A DNA stretch of 64,000 nucleotides from Syncephalis fuscata S228 (lineage: Eukaryota; Fungi; Zoopagomycota): positions 248,001-312,000 of the forward strand of contig JAHLTZ010000005.1 of the NCBI GenBank assembly GCA_025786725.1, read 5' to 3'. A program made the position numbers and the translations under genes. The notes under the pieces are model-generated. The model was not told the DNA's origin, did not search any database, and saw only the letters and a program-made list of their open reading frames with translations. The stretch's first letter is position 1, and each line of letters opens with the position of its first letter. Below, piece after piece: positions 1,826-34,912 of the stretch.

Positions 1826-2640
1826 ATTGTTGACATTATTCTATTAGTATACTTGTTTTTATGCAATTGATTTTCATTCTTTGTTTTATTCTACTATTTA
1901 AACAACTCTTCCATTTGTATTTCAATTTGTTCATAGTCTTTTTATGTACAGCGTTATTCAATTTATGATTGTACATATTACATTATTTATTAATTAAATA
2001 AAGATAATATTTTTATATTAAACAATTTATTAGGCATTTAATGTGATTTGTGTCAAATGATTATTTTTAATAACATTCGCGCAACTGAACTACACATTCG
2101 TTCTATTGAACATGGGACAAGTAGTGAGTTTTATTTAATCGTCACATTATCACACTTATTGCTTTTTGGGAGACAAATGACTAAAATCCAATAATAGCCA
2201 ATCTATTGAACATGATAATGGGTGGTGAGCGACATCAAGCATCAAATACTCATCATTGTAGATTCATTATCCAGTATGCATATATCCTCTATTCACCTAT
2301 GTCATTCCCATTCTATCTCATGATACTATATATTATTCTACGATATACTAAATACATTCTATTGTTTATGTGTTTCAATATACTCCACTCATTGTACCCA
2401 TTGCGCTATACACACTATACCTTCGACATCGTTTTATATACTTTCTTACCGTACATTTGTCATTCTATATACTATTCTATATTCATTAAGTCATTTTGTA
2501 TCAAAAACTACATTTATTTTTGTTCTAGCTTTATTATTTATAAATGTCAACTAATTCCGCTCATTGCTCATGCATATATGCTCAATAACTTGAACATTGC
2601 TAATCTCGTTCAATATTGTATAATCATTATAATGTTTATC
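1826..2640 (+). repeat. Dispersed AT-rich repeat family A, copy 1
   Basis: Near-identical inverted copy at ~32440-33205 (shared spurious ORF MNMIMGGERH...); diverged relatives at ~25060-25560, 31700-31870 and 32100-32285. Confidence 0.85.
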
Positions 2641-2779
2641 ATTCCTTATATATTGGCTATACGTTGTCTATAACCGTTGTCGGTATAGTTTTAACTCTTT
2701 TATTAATAAAAATTGACATATCATACTTATTTTGTTCATCAAGTTATTTTGTTATAACAAATATGAATATGAACAGTTG

Positions 2780-23621: not shown

Positions 23622-24842
23622 ATGTATTCCGGATACGCCATCCTTGCTGCCTGCGCCTTAATGGCCGCCGTTGGAGTACACGCCGCTCCCGCCGATCCAG
23701 CTGCTGCCAAGCAATTTGCTGCATTGCCATTTGCACCAAGTAAATTCTCTCCTGAAGGTTTCCCACTCAATGAAAAGGGTGACGAGTTTCATTTGATTCA
23801 AAAAGATGCCAACCAGGCTCCAGTCTGGATGCCAGAGTCGCAAGTATGGGATCTTAAGAAAAAGGATAGTGAATTCATGGATGTTACCTTTCAGCCTAAT
23901 TTGGCTGACAAGGCAGAAGAAACACGTCGTTCCCAGGTTCGCAAAGGCTCCAACCTGGTTGCAGAGCCAGCAGGCACACTAACACACACGAAGGAAGCTA
24001 AACCCATCGTCGACAGTTGTAATACTACCTTAATGAAATCAGCTTTAGGCAAGCTAGTAACATTCAAAAATCGCTACTATCGCTCTCCCACCGGTACAGA
24101 ATCGGCCAACTGGTTGTTCGGCACTGTCCAAGGTTTGGCAAAAAACGCCAAGGACGGCGTTAAGATTAACGTAACCCAATTCAAGCATCGGTTTAACCAA
24201 CCTTCCGTCATTGCACGAATTGAAGGCGAGGCTGGCCAGGTTGAAACCGTCATTGTTGGCGCGCATCAAGACTCAATTAATGGAGACAATCCACTTAACG
24301 GGGTTGCGCCCGGTGCTGATGACGATGGCTCCGGCACTGTGTCGATTCTTGAGGCATTCCGCGCCATAGTTGACTCTGGATTCAAGCCAAAGCGCCCAAT
24401 TGAATTCCATTGGTATGCTGGTGAGGAGGCAGGTCTACTTGGATCACAAGACGTTGCCGCCAGCTATCAAAGAGCCGGTCGTAAGGTAGCCGGCATGTTG
24501 CAAATGGACATGACCGGCACTCCAGCCAATGGTCGTCCCAACGAAATTGGTATGATTTCCGATAACGTCAATTCGGACCTTACGCAAACGGTCGAGAAAC
24601 TTGTCGGTCAGTTTGTACCAGATGTTACAAGCAAGCGATTCCGTTGTGGCTATGGCTGCTCTGACCACGCCTCATGGACCAAGGCTGGCTACAAGAGCGC
24701 ATTTCCATTCGAATCGGCCGGCTTGCATGACAACGACAACATCCACACAACAGAAGACACCATCGAAAAGGTCAGCTTTGATCATGCCGTTCGATTCAGC
24801 AAGATTGCTGTTGGCTTTGCTGTCGAATTATCGCTTCAATAA
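23622..24842 (+). CDS. Secreted M28 leucyl aminopeptidase (LAP1-like), intronless
   Basis: Signal peptide; GAHQDSIN, PGADDDGSG, FHWYAGEEAGLLGS, QMDMTG, CGYGCSDHASW, IHT metal-binding motifs. Confidence 0.95.
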   Translation: MYSGYAILAACALMAAVGVHAAPADPAAAKQFAALPFAPSKFSPEGFPLNEKGDEFHLIQKDANQAPVWMPESQVWDLKKKDSEFMDVTFQPNLADKAEETRRSQVRKGSNLVAEPAGTLTHTKEAKPIVDSCNTTLMKSALGKLVTFKNRYYRSPTGTESANWLFGTVQGLAKNAKDGVKINVTQFKHRFNQPSVIARIEGEAGQVETVIVGAHQDSINGDNPLNGVAPGADDDGSGTVSILEAFRAIVDSGFKPKRPIEFHWYAGEEAGLLGSQDVAASYQRAGRKVAGMLQMDMTGTPANGRPNEIGMISDNVNSDLTQTVEKLVGQFVPDVTSKRFRCGYGCSDHASWTKAGYKSAFPFESAGLHDNDNIHTTEDTIEKVSFDHAVRFSKIAVGFAVELSLQ

Positions 24843-25059: not shown

Positions 25060-25560
25060 TAATTTGGGGTGTCAATTGACTAAACTTGATAATAATTGCG
25101 CAATTGAACTAGACTTTTGTTCTATTGAAGATGAAGCCAGACGGTAAGTTTTATTTATGATCAAAATACTTATCATCGTAGATTCATTATCCGGTACACA
25201 TATATCCTCTATCCATATGTATCATTCCTATTTCATTCCACACTACTATATATCATTCTATGACATACTAGACACATTCTATTGTTTATATGCTCCAATA
25301 TACTTCATTCGCTCCACTCATTACGTTATACACACTGTAACTTTAGCATTATTTTATATACTTTCCCACCGTACATTTGTCATTCTATATACTATTCTAT
25401 AATCGTATAGCCTTCCTGCATCCAAAGCTGGTCTTATTTTTGTTCTAGCTTTATTATTTATAAGTGTCGGCTAATTCCGCTCATTGATCATGCATATATG
25501 CTCAATAACTTTAACATGGCTAATCGTCGTTCAATATTGTATATTCATTCTACTATTTAT
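25060..25560 (+). repeat. Diverged member of repeat family A
   Basis: Shares blocks such as TTGTTCTAGCTTTATTATTTATAA and CTAATTCCGCTCATTG.TCATGCATATATGCTCAATAACT with 2500-2600. Confidence 0.75.
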
Positions 25561-26340
25561 CGTTTTTTATACAACCGTGCACTTTCTATCTAGCTAAGCC
25601 AGCGTTAGTGCCATTATAACAATGCTATTTGAACTCATCTCTACATAGCACAGACTATATGCACCACGCTTATTTGTTTTCCTTTCCTTTCCGTTACTTT
25701 ACCATCACACTCTTTCTTTCTATTTCTTATTTACACTTGCAATCTGTATTCTTTATTCATCTTACAATCATAATCGTAAGTAGACCTCACTATATGCAAG
25801 TCACACTTGAGTATATCTTCCCTTTCTTCGTATCATCATGCTTGCTTTGTTGTTATTGTCCCAATGAACATTATTTCATTGGTTGAATACACATTCTGTA
25901 TGTATGCTAGTCATCTACACTATATGTCTTTCCAATGCTGCCCACACATATCGTTTAATGCACTGCGTTGCTCTACCATTTGCTACAGCTATCGGCTAGT
26001 ATTTATATTCTATAACTATAGATAGATTGCACTACACTACTTTTTATTGTTTTTGTTGTTGTGTAACTACTGACTCCTTGCTATGAATATTTATTGCATT
26101 GTGTTGATAACAATAGTAGCTATAGTAGTAGTAACTATACTAGTAGATTACATGCATATACTGTGATCATTATCATATACCTATTTTTTATACGTATAGT
26201 ATCCATAGTGATTGTTATTTTTGTGCGCAGTGTCTTATTTTACATTTGATGCAATATCGGGATGACCATATAGCAATATCTGCAATATATTTACGTAAAT
26301 CGAAAATTTTGAATCCGACTTAAAAAACTGCCTTCACTCC

Positions 26341-26459
26341 AACTACGTTCATTGCGCCTAGAAAGCACCGGATCCCGTCTGATCTCCGAAGTTAAGTTAG
26401 GCCGCGCTTCTGTAGTACTGCGGTGGGGGACCACGCGGGAATGAGAAGTAATGTAGTTT
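26341..26459 (+). rRNA. 5S ribosomal RNA gene (dispersed copy)
   Basis: ~119 nt; 5' AACTACG pairs with 3' TGTAGTT (helix I); hallmark GCACCGGATCCCGTCTGATCTCCGAAGTTAAG and AGTACTGCGGTGGGGGACCACGCGGGAA blocks. Confidence 0.95.
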
Positions 26460-26465
26460 CAGTAT

Positions 26466-26536
26466 GCGTAGTTGGTTTAGTGGTATAATTACCGCCTGCC
26501 ACGCGGTAGACCGGGGTTCGATTCCCCGACTACGCA
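26466..26536 (+). tRNA. tRNA-Gly (anticodon GCC, 26498-26500), no intron
   Basis: Acceptor GCGTAGT/ACTACGC, anticodon stem ACCGC/GCGGT with loop CTGCCAC, T-arm CGGGG-TTCGATT-CCCCG, A box TGGTTTAGTGG. Confidence 0.97.
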
Positions 26537-26540
26537 ATCC

Positions 26541-26550
26541 TTTTGCTTTT
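26541..26550 (+). terminator. Pol III terminator T-tracts (TTTT-GC-TTTT)
   Basis: First runs of at least 4 T downstream of both the 5S and the tRNA gene. Confidence 0.6.
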
Positions 26551-27342
26551 GCTGCGACTGATAGGTCACGTGATCTAAATACTGAATAACAAGCGTAAAA
26601 TATAGAAAGTGAGGCTATATACTAAAGGTAATTGCTAATGCAAGATATAGAGCAGCCGCGTGTAAAAAAGCGTAGATATCTGTTTTAAAGTGACAAGGGA
26701 ACTATCCAGCGTGTATATATTTAGAAATAGAAGTAAAAAGACACATGTTTATTTAATATACAATGCACTTTAAGTAGTTGTATGCTATTAAAATAGCGAA
26801 AAGAAATACTAATTGTCTGGGTAATTATATGGCCATTTTAGATAGCCATGTGGCCACAATCAATTGGACTGTAAATGCTTGTTTATTGTCTACCATCTCC
26901 GATTGTATATGAGTTCTAATTGCAGCACTAATTGTAAGTACTATATATAGTCTTTGTTGTAAAATCGTTTATTCATCAACATGACAAACGTTGTGAATGG
27001 AGTCTAGATCGGTTGTTATAATGACAATCATCGGTCTAAAAATATATTTACAAGCAAATTCAATGGAACTGCCAACCAATTAGCACTATTATGCTAATAG
27101 TCATAGTTTATGATTGTAAATTATGCTAAATCAACAATAAAAATTATAATTAGGACAATATGCTATAAGCCGTGCGACAATGCAATACATGTTTAGCACT
27201 GTTACAATAATTAGTGATATAGAACTAGTCTTGTTTATTATATATAGAGCATTGTAAATATGTAAATCTGGAGGTTCACACATTAAGCATTCTTCTTCTA
27301 ATTGAACCTATCAACACCTTTATCAGCACAATTATTATCAAT

Positions 27343-30949: not shown

Positions 30950-32439
30950 TAATAGTTATCTATATGTCATATGCATACTTGTACGAAATATCATACAGTT
31001 TGGTTCATTATACGTAAAGTTATACGTATTAGTATCAATGCTCTATTATTTAAATTATTACTATTAATTATGCTATTGCCTTTTGCCATTTAATTACACT
31101 AAAGTCACTTTTTAACACTACTAAATACTGTTATAGCATTAATGCAACATGCTTATGCTTAGATTTGTAAAATAACGCACCATCAGCATTTTAAAATGTT
31201 ATAAATAATAAAAAACATTTTTGCTGTAACCATAGCTATTAAAATAAAATGCTACATTTCTACGATGGTTATATTATTATAAATAACAAATAATGTCGTT
31301 TTTCAATATTCGCTGATATTGTACGTCAATAGTAAGGTTTTATGTATTATAAACTTAATACTGTTAATGATACATTTTCCACTTTATATTTATTTTATTC
31401 CATATCATTTATTTTGTAGTAGTAACATACTATTCATAATTGTTGTCCGTTTGTCCCTAGTTCAATTGCCAATACACTTTGACTAACTTTGTTTATTGAG
31501 CCATACGGATGAGTAAAACAAATAAAACAAATCTACGTAAAATTATTGTCTTATTAAATTATGTATTAGATTGGTTATTTATAACCAATAATTGCCGGAC
31601 TAGTTAACGCCAAATAGGCCATATAAAATAGGGAAAAGTTAAATAATAAATGAATGCAAATACCAATATTGCAATGTTGCGAAAATGTAACGATATGATA
31701 ATATTTACAATATATATATTTATACAGAATAATCACAATAGTGAATCTATAATAATAATAAATATTTTGATAACTGATATAACTTACCATCCATCTCCAT
31801 ATTCAATAAAATGAATGTATAATTTAATTGCGCAAATATTACCAGGTTTAGTTATTCGATTCCCCTCAAATAACACTAAACTATTAACACACTAACAGCG
31901 GTAGTCAAGCTTAACGCTAATACTAGTGCTGTTATAATAATGCGTAGGTGCAGCAATCAATGCTTATTGTTTTGTTTTATAGCGCTAAAGCTATACCTTA
32001 CCATAATTAATATTATATATTAACAATTGCTTATTGTTTAGTGTGATTTGAATGCCAAATAACTACATTTAATAAATATTTATACATTTGACTAGATATT
32101 TGCTCTATTGAACATAATGATGGGTGATGAGTAACATCAAAGTTTAAAATACCCATTATCATAGATTTATTATCCAGTACGCATATATTTTCTATTCATC
32201 TATATCGTTAGTAATATATGCCTATACTATTATATATTACTTTATGCTATACTGAATACATTATATTGTTATAGGTTTCAATTACATATAGTTTGCTAAA
32301 TGAATGAAATGAATAAGTTAAAATTTATTAATAACAAAGCTAAAGCAAAAAGGACAACTGCAATAGCTAGCACATAGTTACTAGACAATAAAATACTATA
32401 CAACATAGTGAATACACGGTGCGAAGTGACGATTAGTTA

Positions 32440-33205
32440 TGTTCAAGTTATTGAGCATATATACATGATCAATGGTCAACATTAGTCGACATTTATTAAC
32501 AATAAAGCTAGAACAAAAATAAATGTAGTTTTGATACAAAATGACTTAGTGAATATAGAATAGTATATAAAATGGCAAATGTACGGTAAGAAAGTATATA
32601 AAACGATGTCGAAGGTATAGTGTGTATAGCGCAATGGGTACAATGAGTGGAGTATATTGAAACACATAAACAATAGAATGTATTTAGTATATCGTAGAAT
32701 AATATATAGTATCATGAGATAGAATAGGAATGACATAGGTGAATAGAGGATATATGCATACTGGATAATGAATCTACAATGATGAGTATTTGATGCTTGA
32801 TGTCGCTCACCACCCATTATCATGTTCAATAGATTGGCTATTATTGATTTTAGTCATTTGACTCCCAAAAAGCAATAAGTGTGATAATGTGACGATTAAA
32901 TAAAACTCACCACTTGTCCCATGTTCAATAGAAGAATGTGTAGTTCAGTTGCGCGAATGTTATTAAAAATAATCATTTGACACAAATCACATTAAATGCC
33001 TAATAAATTGTTTAATATAAAAATATTATCTTTATTTAATTAATAAATAATGTAATATATACAATCATAAATTGAATAACGCTGTACATAAAAAGACTAT
33101 GAACAAATTGAAATACAAATGGAAGAGTTGTTTAAATAGTAGAATAAAACAAAGAATGAAAATCAATTGCATAAAAACAAGTATACTAATAGAATAATGT
33201 CAACA
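32440..33205 (-). repeat. Dispersed repeat family A, copy 2
   Basis: Reverse complement of ~1826-2600. Confidence 0.88.
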
Positions 33206-33415: not shown

Positions 33416-34643
33416 TTAGTTGGATTTAGTTGATAGTTCAACGGCAAATCCTACAGAAACTTTAGCATAACGAAGTGCATGATTAAAATCAATATCCTTT
33501 ACTGTGTCACGAGTTGTGTGAATGTGACCGTTAGCCTCCAAATCATCGGCTAATTATTATTGTTATTATACATTATTATTAGCATTAAATTATTACATTT
33601 AGTTAATTACTTACTTTCAAAATGGAATGCTGATCGGAAGCCATACTTGTTCCATGATGCATGGTCGGAGCAAGCATAGCCGCATCTCATCTCGCTCCAT
33701 TTAACGCCTGAATAAGTTTCAATAAGCTGTTTAAGGAATCCAGTTAATTCACCGTCGACAAAATCGGTTACTACACCAATAACTTCAGGTTCGGGACGGT
33801 AGCCGGTCATATCATTCTGTAGCGCTGCTACTACTTTACGACCTTCTCGAGTGTAGGCAGCTGCCACGTCTTGCGATCCAAGTAAACCACCTTCTTCAGC
33901 AGAATACCAATGGAATTCAACTGACCGTTCTGGTTGGAATTTACCGGCAACTAATGCACGGAATGATTCTAAAATAGTTACAGTGCCAGAACCATCGTCG
34001 TCAGCACCGGGAGATCTACCAAATGATGGCATCCATTGATTGACCGAGTCTTGATGTGCACTAACAATAACAGTCTCTTCTGGATATTTACTGCCTTCAA
34101 ATCGAGCAATAATGAGCTTTGTGGCCAACGATGTTCAAACACTCGCACAGTAACCTTGGCCTTGTCATCGTCATCATCATGGCCTGTAGATTTAATGACC
34201 TTCTTAATCTGCTTGAAGAGGTATTCTTGCGATTCTTTACCCGATTTGCTTTTATAATAGCGTGTATAGAATGAAGTAAATTTGTCAAGTGTTTCACGCA
34301 TCAAGCTTGTGTTCATGGTCTTCAAGTACTGCTGAACCTTACTATGGTGTTTTGGCGCAGCAGGAAGTGAGGTACGGAATGGTGGTGCAAAGGACATGCC
34401 ATCTTGGTAATTTTCAGTTATATCCATAAAACGAATGCGATGACGCCTCAGCAAGTCCACTTGTCGTTCTGACATCCATTCTGGCGGTGAAGTTTCTGAT
34501 GTTTGGATAAGACGATGGGAACTGGCGTCAGATGATGAGGCACGTAAGGTTAGCTGGTCAAAACCAGTCACCGAAGTGGTCAAAGTAGTGGCAGCAAGGC
34601 ATAGTGCTGCTACTAATGCCGTAGTTGAAGTAACAAAGTGCAT
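33416..34643 (-). CDS. Second secreted M28 leucyl aminopeptidase; intron 33550-33614; 1-nt frameshift near 34112
   Basis: Signal peptide MHFVTSTTALVAALCL; SAHQDSVN, PGADDDGSG, FHWYSAEEGGLLGS, QNDMTG, CGYACSDHASW; last exon HIHTTRD..GFAVELS. Confidence 0.93.
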
Positions 34644-34912
34644 TATAGACACTAATACTCTTATAATATTCAATTGAACAAAATGTTGTTATATATAAAC
34701 AACAGTGACAAAGAATACGTTTAAATACGTACAAGATGAATAGGTAAATAGAATGAGTAGATGATAAACAGGTAGCAAAAGATAGTAATAGTAGTAGAAA
34801 GGGGTAGATTGAGCTGGAGAATATAACAAGTCTCAAGTAAAGACGAAATGATGAGTAATAAATACCAATACTAGTCACGTGGATATATACGTGTGAATGG
34901 CTAAATTGTATT

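Follow-up and report, generated by a model that had tools for sequence, protein, structure and literature searches.

A 5S ribosomal RNA (rRNA) gene and a glycine transfer RNA (tRNA) gene, tRNA-Gly(GCC), stand head-to-tail in a stretch of 64,000 nucleotides (nt) from the fungus Syncephalis fuscata S228 (assembly GCA_025786725.1, contig JAHLTZ010000005.1, positions 248,001 to 312,000; hereafter the window), raising the question of whether RNA polymerase III (Pol III) reads the two as a single unit led by the 5S gene. S. fuscata belongs to the Zoopagales and lives as a parasite on other moulds. In textbooks each eukaryotic Pol III gene is a unit of its own, and the few dicistronic exceptions known from nature all have a tRNA in first place. 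The same layout was found in all 22 of the 5S genes of the S. fuscata genome, an arrangement far beyond chance. Judged from sequence, it is probable (roughly three chances in four) that the 5S genes of S. fuscata and at least two sister species form obligate dicistronic Pol III units, with the 5S gene first and the tRNA gene second.

The 5S genes of Syncephalis and their tRNA partners

A search of the whole S. fuscata assembly (29.4 Mb, 371 contigs) with Rfam recognized 22 5S genes on 19 contigs, scoring 88.9-106.3 bits against an RF00001 threshold of 38. All 22 candidates were scored, and BLAST with the 5S sequence returned the same 22 and nothing else. Each is followed on the same strand by a tRNA 6-8 nt past 5S position 118. 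ARAGORN placed exactly one tRNA in every 3.1-kb 5S locus, always on the 5S strand, and no tRNA was found within 1.5 kb upstream of any of the 22 5S genes. The initial annotation, made from the window pair, had proposed counting the 5S copies with a tRNA less than 20 nt downstream and had regarded a lone, silent copy as a ground for doubt; by both Rfam and ARAGORN the count is 22 out of 22.

Besides further Gly-GCC genes, the anticodons assigned by ARAGORN to the units outside the window were Asp-GTC, Ile-AAT, Glu-CTC and Lys-CTT, and the tally over all 22 units is Gly-GCC (7), Asp-GTC (5), Ile-AAT (4), Glu-CTC (3) and Lys-CTT (3). Throughout, the spacer of 6-8 nt has a sequence specific to its tRNA family. 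Positions 1-118 of the 5S gene are identical in 19 of the 22 copies; the window 5S and one other copy differ from the commonest copy by C40T, and one copy on a small contig (locus L022) carries small deletions.

Seven pairs of loci are 98-99.6% identical (L003/L004, L006/L008, L007/L010, L009/L021, L011/L020, L016/L022 and L017/L018), over the whole 3.1 kb in six pairs and from the 5S onward only in L007/L010. In six of the seven, one member is on a contig shorter than 30 kb. These pairs are probably allelic contigs, which would leave about 15 distinct 5S loci and means that copy numbers taken from the 29.4-Mb assembly are inflated. In a public sequencing run the 5S unitig had a depth of 259 compared with about 14.6 for its flank. 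This corresponds to about 18 copies and therefore argues against a hidden 5S array or 5S genes linked to the ribosomal DNA (rDNA).

The coupling was also evident from the tRNA side, when each linked tRNA was compared with the genome by BLAST (E<=1e-5). All seven Gly-GCC copies, all five of Asp-GTC, all four of Ile-AAT and all three of Glu-CTC were found behind a 5S gene, as were three of the four Lys-CTT copies; the fourth stands alone and has an A+T-rich flank. The tRNA genes read besides these, more than 40 copies with 22 other anticodons, are all free-standing and include none of the linked anticodons. This census is partial, 63 of 1130 candidates from the Rfam tRNA scan having been scored, and is consistent throughout.

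In the window, the two genes are the only Rfam matches within the 64 kb, and their parts are collected in Table 1. The conserved 5S RNA corresponds to positions 1-118 of the gene, and the last pair of helix I joins position 1 with 118, that is, base 26458. The longest T-run at the junction comprises three Ts (26457-26459), and the first T4 runs of the unit (26541-26544 and 26547-26550) both lie 3' of the tRNA, whose A and B boxes are intact by pattern match. The initial annotation had read the junction in the same way, with helix I ending at 26458, a 7-nt spacer TCAGTAT, a tRNA start at 26466, only three Ts after the 5S and the first T4 runs after the tRNA, and all of this was borne out. It had also cautioned that raw reads might hold a longer T-run; a contig from an independent public run covers 26431-26871 and has no bases gained or lost at the junction, so the short T-run is not an under-called homopolymer. 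The spacer is presumed to serve as both the 3' trailer of the 5S RNA and the 5' leader of the tRNA.

Table 1. Parts of the 5S-tRNA-Gly unit and of its upstream region in the window.
Feature	Position	Strand	Basis
5S rRNA gene	26341..26459	+	Rfam RF00001, 104.8 bits, full model
tRNA-Gly(GCC) gene	26466..26536	+	Rfam RF00005, 65.7 bits; ARAGORN, anticodon GCC, at 26465-26537
Junction and spacer, T CAGTAT, without a Pol III terminator	26459..26465	+	read from sequence
Presumed terminator of the whole unit, two T4 runs (TTTTGCTTTTGC)	26541..26550	+	read from sequence
Promoter-proximal 5' flank of the 5S gene, A+T-rich, with TTACGTAA at 26291-26298 and a AAAAAACTGCC block	26289..26340	+	
Upstream region, homologous only to other S. 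fuscata 5S units (~70% identity)	25572..26288	+	all-against-all BLAST, genome search, local BLAST, base composition
One copy of a dispersed high-copy repeat that is not confined to 5S units	25164..25571	+	genome search

The arrangement extends to sister species, which were traced through the M28 peptidase gene adjoining the window unit (23622-24842). The best named relatives of this peptidase are from S. plumigaleata (79%), S. pseudoplumigaleata (78%) and Thamnocephalis sphaerospora (65%), and an Atlas search with it gave fungal matches; two proteins recorded under S. fuscata match the genome itself at 99-100%. Beside its orthologue, S. plumigaleata carries a 5S gene followed after 7 nt by tRNA-Gly(GCC), inverted relative to the peptidase gene; the syntenic unit of S. 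pseudoplumigaleata has the same 7-nt distance between 5S and tRNA-Gly and the orientation of the window. A second unit of S. plumigaleata, 5S followed after 6 nt by tRNA-Ile(AAT), lies beside the EB1 orthologue, and EB1 also neighbours an Ile unit in S. fuscata. The 5S gene thus lies 5' of the tRNA in all three sister-species units. Gly spacers differ in sequence among the three Syncephalis species (CAGTAT, TCAACAT and ACAGTCA) while the spacing is kept. The unit flanks could not be aligned between S. fuscata and S. plumigaleata, and nothing beyond the 5S was found to be shared by the two S. plumigaleata units. The 5S itself differs at about 11-13% of positions among the three species, and five of its base pairs have changed on both sides and are still paired, such compensatory changes indicating that the 5S units are working genes.

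Near EB1 in T. sphaerospora and in a metagenomic relative, tRNA-Ile(AAT) is free-standing, without a 5S in front, about 1.3-1.5 kb upstream of EB1 (L121:2028-2101 and L122:299-372). The Syncephalis 5S-tRNA-Ile unit is placed just downstream of EB1, so the local order differs. The tRNA-Ile is likely to be orthologous between Thamnocephalis and Syncephalis; if this holds, the 5S would have been placed before a pre-existing tRNA gene in the Syncephalis lineage. A scan of metagenomes for tRNA A and B boxes behind the 3' half of a 5S gene gave 37 hits, mostly bacterial tRNA pairs matched by chance, with no fungal relative among them; three were eukaryotic small-RNA arrays of a marine type.

A second M28 peptidase-like stretch was noted in the window (33607-34673, reverse strand). 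It has 52% identity to an S. fuscata paralogue and a stop codon inside, and could be a paralogue, now decayed, of the gene at 23622-24842.

Signals and proposed mechanism of transcription

As the 22 units hold the only 5S genes, they must be transcribed. No T4 run occurs between the 5S and the tRNA in any of the 22 S. fuscata units, and in the Asp and Lys families only TT stands ahead of the spacer. A T4-T6 run was found 0-4 nt past every linked tRNA. Nearly all tRNA genes of the genome, whether linked or free, are followed by TTTT(T)GC, from which T4 appears to be a sufficient terminator in this fungus. The general layout of a dicistronic Pol III gene, namely two genes on one strand 6-8 nt apart, no inner oligo-T and a T4-T6 run after the second gene, is therefore present in 22 out of 22 units. 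In the absence of a terminator from the 5S start to the tRNA end, a precursor of about 205-215 nt is expected as the primary product.

The base composition upstream of the genes points in the same direction. Between -45 and -16, where TFIIIB usually binds, the mean A+T content is 74.8% before free-standing tRNA genes and 70.6% before 5S genes, as against 36.8% before the linked tRNAs, for which this interval is the G+C-rich 3' half of the 5S gene. By composition, the usual TFIIIB site thus resembles a Pol III upstream region before the 5S genes and not before the linked tRNAs, and the claim of the initial annotation that TFIIIB for the tRNA's own promoter would have to assemble on 5S coding DNA agrees with this. 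The 5' flank of the 5S (-52 to -1) is about 85-97% identical among units with different tRNAs; no conservation of it was found in the comparison with S. plumigaleata.

From these features the following course of events may be proposed. TFIIIA, TFIIIC and TFIIIB would recruit Pol III to the internal control region of the 5S gene, with TFIIIB on the A+T-rich 5' flank. Pol III would start at 5S position +1, read through the spacer and the tRNA, and stop at the T-run beyond. Cleavage at the tRNA 5' end by RNase P would release a 5S RNA with a 3' trailer of 6-8 nt, to be trimmed by a 3' exonuclease of the Rex1 type, while the tRNA 3' end would mature as usual. Some additional independent initiation from the A and B boxes of the tRNA would be possible. 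In budding yeast, 5S RNA is normally made with a short 3' extension that is trimmed by Rex1. This Rex1 result is cited in a passage of the study of Yarrowia lipolytica tRNA-5S units (PMC2566860), in which co-transcription and processing were established and precursors demonstrated (Acker et al., 2008, PMC2566860). Engineered cassettes of 5S rRNA, tRNA and guide RNA, which rely on RNase P and Z, also work in fungi (PMC8542335). Together, the Yarrowia precursors and the engineered cassettes indicate that both halves of the model are workable in fungi.

A unit led by a 5S gene needs TFIIIA, and a candidate was found outside the window in a multi-exon gene (G000:C317:562300-563650) encoding about ten tandem C2H2 fingers of the C-x4-C type. 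Pieces of this protein were searched separately against the Protein Data Bank. Fingers 4-5 had Xenopus TFIIIA fingers 4-5 as their best match, in register (E=3e-19, the next best being 2e-12), fingers 2-3 aligned in register with TFIIIA fingers 2-3, and for fingers 6-7 yeast TFIIIA was the second-best match. These finger-by-finger matches suggest that a TFIIIA orthologue is probably present in S. fuscata. A tenth finger has likewise been reported for Yarrowia. Two other zinc-finger clusters (G000:C332 and C257) were considered and rejected, as they are proteins of three to five fingers. With the TFIIIA-like gene, whose presence the initial annotation had suggested checking, all the sequence-level predictions of its 5S-first unit hold, along with the lack of an inner terminator in 22 out of 22 units and the T4-T6 run after the tRNA.

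The tRNA might further be a part of the 5S promoter. TFIIIC bound through its high-affinity B-box module at the tRNA, about 100 nt downstream of 5S box C, could reach back to the A-box/TFIIIA region of the 5S and form a composite of type 1 and type 2 promoters that places TFIIIB upstream of the 5S. We offer this tentatively, as an unlikely extension of the scheme. It would explain why no 5S survives without a tRNA and why four abundant tRNAs are found only behind a 5S. If true, the supply of 5S rRNA and of the linked tRNAs would be tied at the level of the single transcript, and the independent use of Gly-GCC, Asp-GTC and Glu-CTC as partners in the opposite order in Yarrowia would suggest that these tRNA genes are strong TFIIIC platforms generally.

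Several points weigh against dicistronic transcription. Co-transcription and RNase P release are inferred from DNA, the three small public sequencing runs of 2017 being sets of DNA-type contigs, which confirmed the genomic sequence. The linked tRNAs keep intact A and B boxes, so that initiation of their own is possible. The Gly unit of S. plumigaleata has TTTT at its junction, and as T4 is seemingly sufficient for termination, a partial stop after the 5S is possible in that species. The census of tRNA genes being partial, a very divergent free-standing isodecoder of a linked tRNA may exist. Lastly, the long upstream homology of the S. fuscata units described below is absent in S. plumigaleata, and the motifs conserved in it may reflect shared ancestry and not promoter function.

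The main competing explanation is that the adjacent genes are transcribed independently, the tRNA from its own A and B boxes with TFIIIB on the 3' half of the 5S, and the 5S ending non-canonically at TT or TTT; linkage would then be a by-product of 5S spread, for example through landing at Pol III start sites. We consider this unlikely. The boxes do match the consensus pattern in 19 of the 22 linked tRNAs, and the Glu units deviate only in the way usual for tRNA-Glu, but TFIIIB would have to bind the stretch of 36.8% A+T instead of the 74.8% found at free tRNA genes. Human Pol III can stop at non-canonical sites, according to a passage in one report (PMC3141230), whereas the Asp and Lys junctions offer only TT and every other Pol III gene seen in the S. 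fuscata genome ends in T4 or more. One Lys-CTT copy works as a free-standing gene; on the other hand, a passage on the dimeric tRNA genes of Schizosaccharomyces pombe states that their downstream gene needs the upstream promoter (PMC2566860). The free tRNA-Ile beside EB1 in Thamnocephalis and the metagenomic relative is suggestive of later 5S addition, yet the spacing of 6-8 nt has been kept in 22 paralogues and in three species while the spacer sequence drifted.

Upstream sequence and spread of the units

Over 0.7-1.4 kb upstream, units that carry different tRNAs are homologous to one another, with about 70% identity, and this homology ends at the 3' end of the 5S. In the loci L005 (Ile), L015 (Asp) and L019 (Lys), the upstream kilobases are 94-97% identical although the tRNAs differ; conversely, L007 and L010 show 99.6% identity past the 5S and only a distant resemblance before it. 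From both patterns, the identical 5S genes seem to act as break or exchange points between loci. Part of the shared sequence is a tract that is pyrimidine-rich on the 5S sense strand (T 0.41, C 0.22, A 0.25, G 0.12), found at 25572-26090 in the window and at -1000 to -250 in 18 of the 22 units, and homologous between units. No such tract was present upstream of the S. plumigaleata units. Open frames of 120-140 codons within these tracts were dismissed, as they look like artefacts of composition.

Further upstream lies a dispersed repeat of about 400-550 bp, which occurs at no fewer than 70 places of the genome at 76-83% identity on both strands. Besides the copy in Table 1, the window holds copies at 2244-2650 (forward strand) and 32428-32791 (reverse strand), and others were found near some free tRNA genes and away from Pol III genes. 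Often two copies lie 3-6 kb from each other in inverted orientation, a pattern suggestive of terminal inverted repeats or an element of the foldback type.

A retrotransposon gag frame with a zinc knuckle was noted at one unit, locus L010 (L010:1-1074, reverse strand, on G000:C113), where it ends about 430 nt upstream of the 5S. The usual upstream homology is lost there beyond about -20, and the frame may belong to an element whose insertion took place near the point where Pol III starts.

A CACGTG core (GGTCACGTGATC at 26564-26575 of the window) recurs just outside several Pol III genes, being downstream of Gly units and of tRNA-Thr(CGT) and upstream of tRNA-Arg(TCT) (flanks of L056-L058, L068 and L016). 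It was also seen about 90 nt before an S. plumigaleata 5S (L115).

Shared upstream sequence, the high-copy repeat beyond it and the gag frame near one unit could be taken to mean that the 5S-tRNA cassette travels within a mobile or repeated element that has a Pol III promoter, similar to a terminal-repeat retrotransposon in miniature (TRIM) or a short interspersed nuclear element (SINE), and not a pair of working genes; long terminal repeat (LTR) elements bearing 5S sequences are indeed known in other organisms (PMC10886601). This is very unlikely, as the genome has no 5S genes outside the units and, as far as found, no other genes for four of the tRNAs; 19 of the 22 5S copies do not differ at all over positions 1-118, the 5S co-varies between species, and the units occupy syntenic places in three species. 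Copies of the high-copy repeat are also found where there is no Pol III gene nearby. The cassette showed no repeats at its borders, in an inspection that did not extend to target-site duplications. A block of upstream sequence plus 5S that lands as a mobile element before tRNA genes was likewise rejected as the principal explanation, because the far-upstream repeat is a general one, the loci are syntenic between species and the two S. plumigaleata units share only the 5S. An artefact of assembly or annotation, such as a collapsed homopolymer or a chimeric join, is hardly credible even with haplotig-like duplicate contigs in the assembly and the small deletions of the L022 copy, as the same junction recurs at 22 loci, in the independent read-derived contig and in the assemblies of two other species.

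Comparison with known units and significance

The S. fuscata units are read here, from their sequence, as dicistronic Pol III genes in the reverse of the order known from Yarrowia, the tRNA-first organization of which the initial annotation had also named (Acker et al., 2008, PMC2566860). Both fungi have 5S genes dispersed outside the rDNA, with 5S and tRNA on the same strand, a few nt apart and with no terminator between them (PMC2566860). The partners also overlap, Yarrowia using Gly-GCC, Asp-GTC and Glu-CTC, and Lys-CTT in one tricistronic gene (PMC2566860). In Yarrowia, however, the tRNA leads, its A and B boxes drive the 5S and TFIIIA is dispensable; in S. fuscata the 5S leads, and a 5S-type promoter would therefore have to drive the tRNA. 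None of the 22 units or the three sister-species units has the Yarrowia-type order with the 5S 3' of the tRNA. Fusion involves 48 of 108 5S genes in Yarrowia (PMC2566860) and 22 of 22 in S. fuscata. The 5S is released in Yarrowia by tRNase Z at the tRNA 3' end, and would be released in S. fuscata by RNase P at the tRNA 5' end. Processing of one precursor to two RNAs was shown experimentally in Yarrowia (PMC2566860).

In Trichomonascus vanleenenianus, a Saccharomycotina yeast with 49% G+C, every 5S gene is reported to stand in tandem with a tRNA gene, and the genome still has a gene for TFIIIA, as S. fuscata probably does (BMC Genomics, 2026, PMC13130702). The gap between 5S and tRNA is 1-3 bp there; the order is unstated, and the reasoning follows that for Yarrowia, with a tRNA promoter making TFIIIA unnecessary (PMC13130702). 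No claim is made in that study of tRNA species confined to such units (PMC13130702). The phylum of Syncephalis (Zoopagomycota) differs from that of Yarrowia (Ascomycota), and the Syncephalis arrangement thus has an origin of its own, separate from the fusions in Yarrowia and Trichomonascus, but with the same tRNA partners.

The order 5S and upstream region, then tRNA, has been used in engineered 5S rRNA-tRNA-single guide RNA cassettes for Humicola insolens (PMC8542335) and Rhodotorula toruloides. RNase P and RNase Z cut at the tRNA in these cassettes, and fungal cells express and process the fusion (PMC8542335). They differ from the Syncephalis units in being man-made, with a guide RNA as cargo, and not a natural organization, and maturation of the 5S 3' end was not addressed. 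Two Pol III products from one transcript, with a need for the upstream promoter, are known from the dimeric tRNA genes of S. pombe (tRNA-Ser-tRNA-Met) and budding yeast (tRNA-Arg-tRNA-Asp), and tRNA-Gly(GCC) is again a partner in the plant tRNA-Gly(GCC)-small nucleolar RNA (snoRNA) genes, as outlined in a passage of Acker et al. (PMC2566860). All of the dimeric tRNA and tRNA-snoRNA genes of that passage are headed by a tRNA and its type 2 promoter, none by a type 1 (5S) gene (PMC2566860).

Outside the fungi, bacterial rRNA operons with a distal tRNA after the 5S, as in Escherichia coli, give one precursor that is cut by RNase P at the tRNA 5' end (PMC5179076). They are transcribed by the bacterial polymerase from a start at the 16S gene and have no homology to Pol III promoters and no evolutionary link to the units described here. 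The three eukaryotic small-RNA arrays from the metagenome scan (L078, L104 and L105), which probably belong to marine picoeukaryotes, resemble S. fuscata in having a 5S followed on the same strand by a tRNA after about 14-15 nt. Unlike the Syncephalis units, these are not two-gene units and not fungal. The contigs consist almost entirely of genes for small RNAs, the 5S being one member of a long array in which dozens of tRNAs, U1, U6 and signal recognition particle (SRP) RNA are encoded on both strands. In full-text literature searches, which miss some journals, no description of a natural 5S-first unit in fungi was found, as the initial annotation had supposed, and nothing on the 5S genes of Syncephalis.

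The whole genus Syncephalis appears to use a logic opposite to that of the tRNA-led units, with a type 1, TFIIIA-dependent 5S gene in the lead and five abundant tRNAs dependent on it. Should co-transcription be confirmed, these would be the first tRNAs found in nature to be driven by a type 1 promoter, the 3' end of the 5S precursor would be defined by RNase P, and ribosome synthesis would be coupled to the supply of tRNA in a fixed ratio. The recurrence of tRNA-Gly(GCC) in Pol III fusions has already been remarked upon (Acker et al., 2008, PMC2566860), and an independent origin with the same partners makes the reason for it testable by comparison. Fungal engineers devised their 5S-tRNA guide-RNA cassettes on their own, and the Syncephalis units offer a natural model for them.

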